NCBI RefSeq assembly: GCF_002113885.1
Contig: NW_018406060.1
Coordinates: 1,022,315-1,086,314 of the forward strand
Reading direction: 5' to 3'
DNA length: 64,000 nucleotides
Source: Mizuhopecten yessoensis
Taxonomy: Eukaryota
A model generated the notes under the pieces. The model was not told the DNA's origin and did no database searches. It saw only the letters and a program-made list of their open reading frames with translations. Positions within the stretch are counted from its first letter, which is position 1, and each line of letters begins with the position of its first letter. Of the stretch, positions 17,901-59,100 are shown piece by piece. The translations under genes and the position numbers were made by a program.

Positions 17901-20900
17901 ACTATCAGCTGGTGGGTATCTTTATAAAGTGCATTATCGTGATGCCTTGTTCTTTTAAATTTTATCTGTAGCAATAGCACAATATTCTGGTTAGCTCATA
18001 GACTCTTACGAAGTTCTGTGATTAAGTAATCATGGCCAAAGGCATTTGAAATGTATTTCTATGTAGCAGAGACTCTTTGGGAAGTTGGAAATATCTGTTT
18101 ATGTTTAATTTGGTGTGTAATTGATTTGTAAATATTCGGTGTAAGATTCAAACACTTAGCAATGGGTATGTTTTCATCTCAGCTTTATATCCATATATTA
18201 TAGTTGATCATGTCACATACACAAGTTTATAATTGTGGCACTAACAATAGTGTTTAATTTGGAAAATAATTCAGCATTAAACATTATTAATATGTTTTTA
18301 ATATACATTATGTACATTTCATTAAAATGTTAAAGTATTTAATTTTGCTTTATGAGATTACAAACGTATTAAATATCCAGGTACCCGCAGTAAGCAGTGT
18401 TTTAAAACATATTATAAAATTTATTATGAAGAATTTTTGCTTGTTATGTAATTACATGTATAACTGAGAACATCTGTTGATAGAGTAAACTGGTTGAAAA
18501 CCTGAAAGGTTCCATTTGTCAAAGTAAATGCAAGGTTCAAGTGAATATTTCATTCTTTTTTTCAAATTTATTTAACTAGGGAATCTTTTTGAAACAGTGT
18601 AATAAAGTAACAATTCCCTGCTTTAAAGCTTGAATTTGATATAAGTTAGATTTCAATAGGTTGGCATTCTGTTATTTTTGATGGTAAATTATATAACAGG
18701 ACAGGGACAAAACCCAGCCCGACAGGCCAGTGTTAATGCAGGTATCCCAGTATCTGTACCTGCCTGTGGAGTGAACATGCTGTGTGGGTCAGGACTGCGG
18801 GCCATAGTAATGGGGACACAGGCTATAAAGACAGGCGACGCTCAGGTGGTAGTGGCAGGGGGACAGGAGAGTATGAGTAAGGTGAGAATTGTATACTAAC
18901 GAGTAAGGTGAAAGCTGAATACTGATGAGTAAGGTGAGAGCTGTAAACTGATGAGTAAGGTGAGAACTGTATACTGATGAGTTAGGTGAGGGCTGTATAC
19001 TGATGAGTAAGATGATAGCGGTATAATGATGAGTAAGGTGAGAGCTATATACTGATGAGTTAAGTGAGAGCTGTATACTGATGAGTAAGGTGATAGCTGT
19101 ATACTGATGAGTTAGGTGATAGCTGTATACTGATGAGTTAGGTGGGGACTGTATACTGATGAGTTAGGTGAGGGCTGTATACTGATGAGTAAGGTGATAG
19201 CTGTATACTGATGAGTTAGGTGAGAGCTGTATACTAATGAGTAAGGTGATAGCTGTATACTGATGAGTAAGGTAATAGCTGTATACTGATGAGTTAGGTG
19301 AGAGCTGTACACTGATGAGTTAGGTGAGAGCTGTATACTGATGAGTAAGGTAATAGCTGTATACTGATGAGTTAGGTGAAAGCTGTGTACTGATGAGTAA
19401 GGTGAGAGCTGTATACTAATGAGTAAGGTGAGAGCTGTATACTAATGAGTAAGGTGAGAGCCATATACTGATGAGTAAGATTAGAGCTGTATACTGATGA
19501 GTAAGGTGAGAGATGTATACTGATGGGTAAGGTGAGAGCTGTATACTGATGACCAGTAGAGACTTAAACATTTGTATCCAAATAGACATTAATCACAAAG
19601 AATCTTTATGTACGATATGTAATTGAGGCTACACATTTACATGTGAGTGTATTTTGTAATCACAGTGTCCATACACAAATTCATTTTTGGGAGAAAACTG
19701 AAGTCTTGATCGCCTGATAATTTTTACATTTCAACTGTGTGTTGATCATTACTTTCAGGAAGAAACTAGGTCAAGTCGAAGCCACTGGCAATGAAAATAT
19801 AAACAAAATTAAATAAAAGTTAAAACTTTGTATACAGGTGGTAATTCAGTTTCTTATTGCTTTGAAACTAACAGGTGATAAATTCAGTTTCCGATTGCTT
19901 TCAACCCGAACAGGTGATAATTGCTTTCAATCTAAATATGTTTGCTAATCATTCTTTAAGGAATACCACTTTCTGAAGACCTTTACTATTTTCGGGCAAA
20001 CATGAACTCAAATTCAAAGTCGCTGTTACTAAAATTGGGGAAAAGAAGGTACACAAATTTCTCATCAAGCTGACAACACTAGTTCTGATACACCAAAACT
20101 ATTTTCAAATTGCATATATGTACATAGATATAGTGATTTCTATGTATGCCTTTCTTTTCAATCCATTATCTCTTCTCATCTTGCCTCTGCACACCTCAGA
20201 TACCTCTGCCAGCTACCTGTCCACTTATCTGCAGCATACACTCTGGGCTCTTGTTTCTCACCTGTTGGTGATCACAAGTAAAATATGTTGTAGATGAATA
20301 AATAAATGAACAAACTTTTTATTTTGAATCATATTAATCTGACATGTAACAAAGCTATATAGAATTACTGTAGAATCATTTATTTTTGTGGGGTTGAAGT
20401 TTCGTGGTTTTCATATACTGGCCTGTTTCAAGGACATATATTTCGCTGATTTCTAATTTTCACCTATCCATATCATACCAAATATATGTTTTTGTGGGGA
20501 TTTAATTTTGTGGATTTTGGTTATCCTCGAAATAAACGAAATTTAATGTCCCACAAAAATTTATGATTTTACAGTACATAAAACAAACTAAAAATATTCT
20601 TTTTCATTTAGGCTCCTCATTGTGTACATATGCGTACCGGGACAAAGTTTGGTGATGTTTCTATGACTGACACCATGCTGTCAGATGGTTTAGTTGACGC
20701 TTTCAACAAATATCACATGGGCATCACAGGTATGTTATCAACATAAGTCCTGGTCACAAACACCACCTAGACATAACAGACACAGGTATTAACCTCCGCC
20801 ACAAATATCACATGGGCATCACAGGTATGTTATCAGCATAAGCCCTGGTCACAAACACCCCCTAGACACAACGGATATAGGTATTAACTCATTCACCCCT

Positions 20901-56168: not shown

Positions 56169-59100
56169 ATGAATTCTATTTTGGGTGGCTCGCCTTCTCC
56201 TTTCACGCATCAACGAAATATCCCAGGAAGTGCTAGAAGACCATCTAGTGGAAGACCGGGCACCTCCCGTAACCCAATCACGGTAAAAATTACATACATC
56301 CCACACAGCCCTGTCACAGTAAACTTCACATACAACACCTAACACAGCCCTGTCACAGTAAACATTCCATACAACCCTGTCACAGTCCTGTCACAGTAAA
56401 CATCACATACAACACCTTACACAACCCTGTCACAGTAAACATTATATACATCCCACACAGCCCTGTCACAGTAAACATTACATACAACACCTTACACAGC
56501 CCTGTCACAGTAAACATTACATACAACACCTTACACAACCCTGTCACAGTATACATTACATACAACACCTAACACCTGTCACAGTAAACATTACATGCAA
56601 CACCTTACACAACCCTGTCACTGTATACATTACATATAACACCTTACACAACCCTGTCACTGTATACATTACATATAACACCTTACACAATCCTGTCACT
56701 GTATACATTACATATAACACCTTACACAACCCTGTCACTGTATACATTACATACAACACCTTACACAACCCTGTCACAGTAAACATTATATGAAATGTTT
56801 GGATTTTACTAATCAATACTATATTGCATGAATTAATTGGTAAAGTTTACAATGTATAACCTAAAGTTTATCAAGTTAACAATATGCTACATAATTTTTA
56901 ACAGAAATTAAAAAAATCAAAGTCAAATATAACTATTCATGATGTAGACTAGGATTACATTCAGTCATTCATGATCACTTTTCATTTTGTTTGAAAGTGA
57001 AAGCATTTTTTTAGGTCACCTGAGCTTTAGCTCAAGTGACCTATTGCTATCCGTTTTCGTCCGTTGTCGTCCGTCGTCCGTTAACATTTTACATTTCAAA
57101 CTTAAAGTCAAGTTCTGCTGGACCGATCGAACTGAAAGTTGGTAGGAATGATCAGCTCATGGTCCTGACAAAGTTAAGTTAACATTATACTATTTTTTAC
57201 TCAAATTGGTACATATTTCAACAACAAAAATAAATACTATAGACTCAGGTGACCGTTAAGGCCCATGGGCCTCTTGTTAATTTGCTATATCAGTTCTGAT
57301 ATCAATAAGTCATATTTTTAAATTATGAAGACAGATGTGATTATAATACTTAAATTTCAAATAAATGTACCTGTGATTAAGGTTGTAATTAGTTGTTCAA
57401 CTGGTCTAGATCTGCTTGTATCACTAAAAGTTATTACACTATTAAGGACTAGGTGACATATTCTACATGTCATTTTTTCTTGTCTTGGTCAGGGAGAAGA
57501 ATACGATTACAGGCCACCATCAAGACAAGTTTCCAGACCAGAGCCACCATCAAAACAAGTTTCCAGACCAGAGCCACCACCATCAAAACAAGTTTCCAGA
57601 CCAGAGCCATCATCAAGACAAATTTCCAGACCAGAGCCGCCATCAAGACAAGTTTCCAGACCAGAAAGTCGTCCACAGGGGTATGTGTCCTAAGTGATTA
57701 AGACACATTCTGCAGTGATTCTGAAGTAGGGCATGGAGCCAATCTTATGCATGATACATTGTTACAATAATAAATGAAATATTGAAAAAAACCACCACTA
57801 AATCTTTGAGATATGTTTAGGTGACATACATTTCAATTTTAACAGGGTTTAACCATTTCACCCCTATGCAACTTTAGTAGACTCTCCCATGCATTGATGT
57901 GGATGAGTCCATTATGGTCTACAGTGGTAAAAGGGTAAATAAGAGTTGGTTTAAGTTTGATTGTTAACAAGTTTTAAAAACACCATATAATACATGGTCC
58001 TTATACTAAGGATTACTAAGGATATAGCATTCTAAATAAACAACATACATGTATATATGATATAATATTCTAAATAAACAATGTACATGTATATATGATA
58101 TAGTATTCTAAATAAACAACATACATGTATATATGATATAGTATTCTAAATAAACAACATACATGTATATATGATATAGTATTCTGAATAAACAACATAC
58201 ATGTTTATATGATATAGTATTCTAAATAAACAATGTACATGTATATGTATGTATACATATATCACATGTAATTTCCTTAAACTTAACAGTTTAATATTAA
58301 ATTTTTAAACAAATTTTGTTTTAGTGTTCCAGCTTTGAATTTGAATTGCTTTACAAGAGATGCAGAGGTGACTCGTCCCATACAGGTAGATGACTACTTA
58401 GACTCACCGGGCTCTGCCAGGACTGCTGTTAGGTAGGATCAATTTATCAGGTTGTGAGGTGTAAACACAAAGGTGTTTTTGCTGGACTTGACTGTTGTTG
58501 ATATAGTGTCGTTAAAAATTAAGTATAAATGTATTGTTTGCATGATTTGTGATTTCCTGTTACAGATACAGATAGTTTATTAGAGTCTCACCATCCGCAT
58601 ACATATATACAATGATTACATAAAACATACATAAAACATATGACGCAAGCCACTCTAAAAGAGTTATGAGAGACTAAAAATAATTTAAATTACATGTAAA
58701 AGCACTTCACTTAAAAGAAACTTGCATTAAAAGGCTATATGAGAGATTTAGAAGCTAATACATGCCATACAATCATATTGACAAGTCCGCGCCTGTCAGC
58801 CAGGGATCCACCACATCTAAAGAAACTCTAAAAAAACAAGTTTAAACAAACATTAATTGTAACCTTTTTAGTGCATTTAAATTATAAAGGATTATATAAG
58901 TTTTAATGACACAAACTTAAGGATGTACACCTCTGAGAAGTCAAAAAATTCCTGTAATAAACTTTTTTTCTTATATTGATTTTTGGAAAAAGGAGATAAT
59001 GGCATAGTAGAAAATGCAAAAAAAAATATATGTCCGTGTGTTCGTTTTTGCGCTATGATCAGTCAAAGATACCAATATAACACAATAGGTGATTTTAGGT

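Follow-up and report, generated by a model that had tools for sequence, protein, structure and literature searches.

Why should several introns in one short genomic stretch each open with many copies of their own 5′ splice site? The question arises from 64 kb of the scallop Mizuhopecten yessoensis genome (NW_018406060.1:1,022,315-1,086,314; hereafter the window, meaning the whole stretch analyzed, in an assembly of 987.6 Mb and 82,659 contigs). Here, three introns of a cytosolic-type (ACAT2-like) thiolase gene, and one intron behind a putative first exon of a downstream gene, begin with tandem arrays whose units join the end of the local exon to the GT donor and the first intronic bases. A preliminary description of the window had proposed either a mechanism linked to the 5′ splice site or, alternatively, a mere tolerance of such duplications as long as the first donor stays intact. 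We consider it fairly probable that the four arrays are minisatellites of the kind known as mirages, that is, chance duplications across a junction that were expanded and tolerated.

Results

Upon calling minisatellites in the window with Tandem Repeats Finder (TRF), we obtained 14 distinct ones, together ~21% of the sequence, and all four arrays of the preliminary description were among them. Each is a head-to-tail array of at least three similar units on the + strand, and in each, unit 1 consists of the exon's last 9-36 nucleotides (nt), the GT donor and the first 15-69 nt of the intron (exon/intron boundaries are marked by a slash below). Array 1 (18873-19552; 26 bp × 26.2 copies, 88% matches) starts 9 nt upstream of the donor of thiolase exon 3 (18700..18881, + strand), which ends in ATGAGTAAG/GT with the donor AAG/GTGAGA, and its unit comprises the last 9 nt of the exon and 17 nt of the intron (GTGAGA...). 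Array 2 starts ~24-26 nt upstream of the donor of exon 4 (20612..20729, + strand; end GGCATCACAG/GTATGT, donor CAG/GTATGT). It was placed by TRF at 20706-21541 (95 bp × 8.9 copies, 78% matches) and extends to ~21710, farther than first described, with ~9-10 units of ~24-26 exon nt and 69 intron nt. The donor copies in its units read CACAG/GTATGT, every unit carries a second GT site (CACAG/GTATTA), and the array is broken at 20885-20975 and 21537-21590 by copies of a ~90-bp element resembling a miniature inverted-repeat transposable element (MITE). Array 3 (25141-26571; 51 bp × 28.1 apparent copies in the assembly, 100% matches) starts 36 nt upstream of the donor of exon 8 (25066..25176, + strand; end CCTAGTAAA/GTAGGT, donor AAA/GTAGGT). 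Its unit of 36 exon nt and 15 intron nt runs in frame without stops, at 17 amino acids (aa) per unit, and the array is followed by a diverged partial copy.

Array 4 (56271-56788; 39 bp × 13.6 copies, 88% matches) starts 12 nt upstream of the predicted donor ACG/GTAAAA of a putative first coding exon (56169..56282, + strand), which was read from the sequence as an ATG-initiated open reading frame (ORF) of 38 codons with a plausible donor. Its unit 1 comprises 12 nt of this putative exon, the GT and 25 nt of the intron; the 12 exon nt are shared with the array, 9 of them being identical to the consensus unit in register. Array 4 would hence count as an exon-boundary array only if the putative first exon is real. 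The label "CAPS2-like" earlier attached to the downstream gene was not confirmed, as five ORF pieces taken from the two genes downstream gave no Pfam match. A possible fifth donor-spanning case, again with a putative exon, is a 40-bp × 27.5 array on the + strand (42825..43991; TRF part 42890-43991), whose diverged first copies span a possible 46-nt exon and its TG/GTAACC donor; the alignment score of these leading copies, 34, was reached by 0 of 500 shuffles. We did not count a 33-bp array at 62412 as donor-anchored, since it begins 22 nt past the donor and has nothing in common with the exon. We found no acceptor-spanning array within the 64-kb window, in agreement with the preliminary description. 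An 18-bp × 87 array (26578..28134, + strand), which is not exon-derived, fills the remainder of intron 8 behind array 3 and stops 64 nt short of exon 9, and is therefore not acceptor-anchored.

We placed the exon ends of the thiolase gene by tblastn with E. coli AtoB, followed by a reading of frames and splice sites exon by exon; exons were treated singly and no joined protein model was used. The gene has nine coding exons, and every intron is GT-AG. Exon 3 is supported by the AtoB match, its open frame, a Pfam Thiolase_N match in a profile search of the genome and its retention in orthologues; exon 4 is supported by the AtoB match and its frame; and for exon 8, the frame demands the assigned donor in order to join exon 9 at 28199. 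Homology and reading frame thus both place the exon end and the splice signal of arrays 1-3 within the exon-adjacent unit. A search with the exon 3 protein returned mostly single-exon ORFs from many animals, the scallop protein not being among the matches, and these exon-sized ORFs agree with the exon ends assigned here. In arrays 1-3, the exon-derived portion codes for conserved thiolase residues, including ESMSK and NKYHMGIT. As these residues are conserved and the exon ends are those found in other animals, the copying must have run from exon to array. Moreover, in the whole 988-Mb assembly, the array 2 and array 4 units have no match outside their own locus, which, together with the conserved residues encoded by the exon parts, indicates that the units derive from the local junction and not from a dispersed repeat. 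Among the matches, one 372-aa thiolase model of another animal carries two tandem copies of the exon 3 segment, which reflects a genuine exon duplication or else a gene model drawn across a repeat.

We compared the orthologous gene in six other invertebrate assemblies, retrieved via exon-3-sized ORFs at 57-87% exon identity. The nine-exon structure was common to the orthologues and all eight intron positions were matched, indicating that the introns are old and the exon ends conserved; the earlier suggestion that the arrays seed intron gain by tandem duplication therefore fails here, as introns shared with distant orthologues are not new. Arrays 1-3 were absent from all six orthologous loci. 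Hence, within old introns, the arrays are lineage-specific and recent. Their units are unrelated in sequence and their internal identities differ (88%, 78%, 100% and 88% for arrays 1-4), which upholds the earlier view that they arose as four separate events. The orthologues bear junction arrays of their own, at other junctions than in the scallop: loci L076/L077 contain a 57/61-bp × 12 donor array built from the last 30 nt of exon 7 and GTGAGT..., which in L076 is in frame and stop-free, and locus L036 contains a 97-bp acceptor-spanning duplication of the intron end, the AG and the first ~25 nt of exon 8. In a further orthologue, a 22-bp × 57 array (L078:10237-11490) begins 33 nt past the exon 3 donor and is not exon-derived.

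We confirmed that the four donor arrays are real, leaving aside the copy number of array 3. Logan contigs from two DNA runs of other individuals, generated in other studies in 2022 and 2025, matched 18650-18995 with 0 differences, a segment that includes exon 3 with its donor and four and a half units at the head of array 1. Contigs from both runs also covered 20749-20842, the junction between units 1 and 2 of array 2. As these junctions are present in contigs from other individuals, arrays 1 and 2 are not assembly artefacts. Within array 2, 21081-21454 had no contig depth in either run, but such holes are uninformative and contigs cannot size arrays, so that this one may or may not stem from shorter alleles. 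The window contains 0 N. Elsewhere in the same assembly, a perfect 160-bp × 9.1 array beside a kinase exon (L019:1-1455, contig C5273) ends exactly at N and is probably a gap-closing product; it probably calls for caution with other 100%-identical arrays of this assembly, array 3 included.

The arrays carry ladders of intact decoy donors, as had been proposed. In array 1, 23 units retain the GT in a donor-like 9-mer (≤2 mismatches) and 9 of 26 contain the exact 9-mer; use of decoy 2 would add 26 nt, causing a frameshift and a stop. Array 2 has the exact CAG/GTATGT in 7 of its ~10 units, and use of the next donor would add 95 nt, again with a frameshift and a stop. All 28 decoys of array 3 are exact, and each further donor would add 17 aa, in frame and stop-free. 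In array 4, the putative authentic donor ACG/GTAAAA occurs once, the decoys read ACA/GTAAAC, and use of the second donor would add 12 aa before a stop. RNA depth in one run fell from ~12 on exon 3 to ~2 in the bin containing the exon end and then to 0, which fits use of the first donor weakly, at a coverage (<12x) too low for splice joints.

Junction arrays are not exclusive to donors, and both junction types occur in the same genome. In an ACAT1-like thiolase paralogue on contig C5514, we found a donor array of 30 bp × 11 copies (L039), with 23 exon nt and GTAAGTG in each unit, and an acceptor array of 41 bp × 15 copies (L003), whose unit joins 33 intron nt ending in AG to the first 8 nt of the exon and in which the functional acceptor copy comes last. 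A 20-bp array reaches right to the acceptor of a myosin exon (L055). Three further candidates (L061, L046 and L078) were rejected as junction-anchored because their arrays end or start 33-86 nt off the junction. The introns of the ACAT1-like paralogue are nearly all minisatellite, with 63% of L003 being array, and in one intron the 30-bp donor-anchored array is followed by a 46-bp array.

Is there, then, an excess of arrays at donors? For the window, uniform placement of ~14 arrays with unit lengths summing to 645 bp predicts ~0.25 arrays straddling any of ~25 donors, against 4 seen (Poisson ~1e-4, a post-hoc figure, as the window had been picked out). The window is an upper outlier, which suggests that such arrays cluster by gene or region. 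We also took an unbiased sample of 57 exon loci with 1.5-kb flanks, obtained from Pfam models (thiolase, kinase, myosin and aldehyde dehydrogenase); many of the loci were long or intronless kinase exons. Junctions at which the domain runs on into the next exon comprised 49 donors and 43 acceptors. The 159 kb of flank contained 38 arrays (9.6% repeat), of which 1 lay at a donor and 1 at an acceptor, plus 1 abutting an acceptor, compared to 0.67 and 0.59 expected under uniform placement. No significant excess of junction arrays over chance was hence found among these 49 donors and 43 acceptors, and both clear junction arrays of the sample were located in one thiolase gene.

An annotation-free count across the genome gave a different picture. 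We counted three copies of an 8-mer motif at 8-38 nt spacing and compared them to the reversed motif: the donor motif AGGTAAGT yielded 4505 matches and its reverse 765 (5.9x), the donor motif AGGTGAGT 2025 against 831 (2.4x), and the acceptor-type motif TTTTCAGG 256 against 453 (0.57x). Perfect consensus-donor arrays are thus several-fold commoner than composition-matched controls. The count covers two donor motifs and one acceptor motif, is heavy-tailed and does not place the arrays against real exons. One dispersed element accounts, through its termini, for many of the TTTTCAGG matches. The AGGTAAGT triples represent roughly 400 arrays. When only the first 100 matches in each listing are considered, the distinct arrays numbered 9 by contig C170 for AGGTAAGT and 9-10 by contig C871 for its reverse, a similar ratio. 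If both donor 8-mers together make up an estimated ~10-20% of donors, ~1-2% of donors would carry such an array at this period, compared to ~0.2-0.4% of random sites. A donor bias is therefore plausible, and the motif excess, if it holds at real exon ends, would require some positive bias, mutational or selective, beyond tolerance. As a side observation, at least 20 loci, for example C123:919098 and 926865, carry triple TTTTCAGGAACAACAACCAA in inverted pairs with ~7.7 kb between them, resembling the termini of a dispersed mobile element.

Discussion

The breakpoints of the junction donor arrays compared here follow no common rule. Counted from the GT, left breakpoints fall 9, 12, 23, ~24-26, 30 or 36 nt upstream and right breakpoints 7, 15, 17, 25, 27 or 69 nt downstream, and the arrays terminate in short partial units of 3, 7 or 13 nt. 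Breakpoints so variable, with no constant distance to the GT, speak against a site-specific mechanism, and in combination with the partial units they are the mark of ordinary slippage or of microhomology-type tandem duplication followed by unequal exchange; breakage or stalling at one set position within the splice site would have left a different pattern. We suggest that an array would probably start as a short tandem duplication that happens to span an exon/intron junction, arising by replication slippage or microhomology-mediated repair, and that it could then grow and be homogenized through unequal exchange or slippage like any minisatellite. With minisatellites occupying 10-21% of the DNA sampled from the scallop genome, this very high output means that junction-spanning arrays arise often and independently. 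Such arrays would persist where the exon-proximal splice site is intact and remains the choice of the spliceosome. Copies of a donor fall downstream, within the intron, and would stay silent, whereas copies of an acceptor precede the real acceptor, would be met first and compete with it, and may hence be tolerated less often. Such an asymmetric tolerance could produce a donor bias without any mutational process specific to donors.

Closely related arrays are known. The amphioxus mirages in Adh3, the globin genes BflGb6 and BflGb9, troponin C and PGBD5 are tandem repeats that extend across an exon/intron boundary, with cases at 5′ as well as 3′ boundaries; they leave splicing undisturbed, and their mechanism was stated to be unclear (PMC3087553, PMC3902484). 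As in the scallop, their units (10-160 bp) copy a splice signal, show high identity between copies and occur several times per gene; the scallop arrays differ in their bivalve host, in reaching 26-28 copies, and in numbering three in one gene and two in a paralogue. In our literature search, we found no report of such arrays from a bivalve. In humans, the 37-bp variable-number tandem repeat in intron 7 of F7 has a first monomer of 4 exon nt and 33 intron nt, so that identical pseudo-donors follow the authentic donor (PMC1557585). Of its 5-9 identical donors, the most upstream alone is used, by 5′-to-3′ scanning (PMC1557585), and a scanning process that picks the first donor makes downstream copies harmless. 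The same exclusive use of the authentic, most upstream donor was observed for the minisatellites of LMNB2 and PDGF intron 4, while for those in IFI6 (6-16) and in intervening sequence 13 (IVS13) of CBS the two nearest decoys are used as well (PMC1557585). In all these human genes, as in the scallop, the first monomer crosses the exon/intron boundary; the human cases are single loci with splicing experiments, whereas the scallop arrays are known here from sequence. The tolerance alternative raised in the preliminary description is backed by the F7 experiments (PMC1557585). Mirage arrays were further proposed as raw material for intron gain of the type described in the model of Rogers (PMC3087553), in which tandem duplication of an AGGT-containing segment creates an intron. 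The scallop arrays share with that model the extra GT sites made by duplicating a splice signal, but they lengthen existing introns that are old and shared with orthologues, and make no new one. Taken singly, each scallop array hence belongs to an already described kind and is an ordinary curiosity.

Several observations weigh against chance duplication followed by tolerance. The decoy donors show no decay, which fits their youth but does not prove their silence, and use of distal donors in array 3 would evade nonsense-mediated decay because the array is in frame and stop-free. That decoys are silent in the scallop is something we infer. The window itself, with 4-5 donor arrays against ~0.25 expected and three of them within one gene, exceeds what uniform placement would give. 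Tolerance alone cannot exceed the uniform rate, yet the donor 8-mers are over-represented in short-period arrays (5.9x and 2.4x). A further idea, which we regard as unlikely, is that exon/intron junctions of this scallop, and 5′ splice sites above all, are true hotspots of minisatellite birth or retention, several-fold over matched intronic sites and clustered in certain genes. If it were true, decoy ladders would be present at a few per cent of donors, which amounts to thousands, with either transcription- or splicing-coupled mutation or selection for spare U1 sites as the cause.

The mutational version of this idea, like the preliminary description, invokes pausing of RNA polymerase II (Pol II), U1 engagement or R-loops at the 5′ splice site, here as candidate causes that would stall replication forks and lead to template switching, so that duplications start preferentially at donors. 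In its favour are the genome-wide excess of donor-motif triples over the reversed controls, with the acceptor 8-mer at 0.57x, alongside the 4-5 donor and 0 acceptor arrays of the window and the 4 donor arrays spread across two thiolase genes. Neither exclusivity to the 5′ splice site nor a fixed geometry is supported: acceptor-spanning cases are known from this very genome and gene family (L003) and from an orthologue (L036), and the breakpoints, which vary between -9 and -36 on one side of the GT and between +7 and +69 on the other, share no common geometry. Furthermore, only 1 of the 49 donors in the unbiased sample bears an array, with no excess, and the motif count, based on few motifs with heavy tails, does not place arrays at real exon ends. 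We consider this explanation unlikely. Selection for spare splice sites, whether for better exon definition or splicing rate, for guarding long introns from premature cleavage, or for isoforms made from in-frame ladders, would account for the intact decoys, for the in-frame, stop-free units of array 3 and of the L076 array in another species, and for the enrichment of donor motifs in arrays and the presence of several arrays in one gene. It strikes us as highly improbable, as the arrays are young, lineage-specific and missing from orthologues, decoy use in array 1 or 2 would lead to a frameshift and a stop, any young homogenized array is expected to keep intact decoys, and decoys are largely silent in the published human and amphioxus cases (PMC1557585, PMC3087553). 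The arrays, or the number of their copies, could also be the product of a short-read assembler or gap closer. Array 3 with its 28 perfect copies, the perfect 160-bp × 9 array of the same assembly (L019) that ends at N, and the missing contig depth of two other individuals at 21081-21454 point in this direction. Yet the diverged copies in arrays 1, 2 and 4 would not be invented by an assembler loop, independent contigs are identical across the decisive junctions (18650-18995 and 20749-20842), the window contains no N, and the same anatomy appears in unrelated assemblies of other species, which leaves an artefact very unlikely. Chance duplication across junctions, followed by expansion and tolerance, therefore remains our preferred explanation.

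With splice-site-copying arrays at ~2% of the sampled junctions and 4-5 in the window, it is the scale and not any single array that could matter. The scallop offers a natural experiment on how the spliceosome ignores dozens of perfect decoys and on whether junctions are mutational hotspots, and the excess of consensus-donor motifs in short-period arrays gives an annotation-free hint of a donor preference. In practical terms, arrays of this sort lead gene predictors astray and become inflated or collapsed when short reads are assembled.

Other repeats and elements in the window

A single open frame of 731 codons (25066-27258) connects thiolase exon 8 with the 18-bp array by way of the 51-bp array, and the 18-bp array lacks stops in several frames of either strand, making it a trap for gene predictors. 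The MITE-like element of ~90 bp, whose inverted ends read ACTCATTCACCC...GGGTGAATGAGT, has two insertions in array 2 and one in intron 6 (23884-23975). In two DNA runs, the depth of its words is as high as 2-3 x 10^5, and the element is abundant in RNA reads too. A 34-bp × 142 satellite (34092-38914; 4.8 kb, 87% matches) is intergenic, with a strong skew of C over G and no relation to an exon seen. Between genes, reverse-transcriptase fragments on the minus strand (52399-54746), with a weak match to Pfam RVT_1, represent a decayed retroelement. Finally, a 30-bp × 5 coding repeat at 57513-57665, encoding PPSRQVSRPE-like decapeptides, lies within exon 2 of the gene predicted to begin at 56169.

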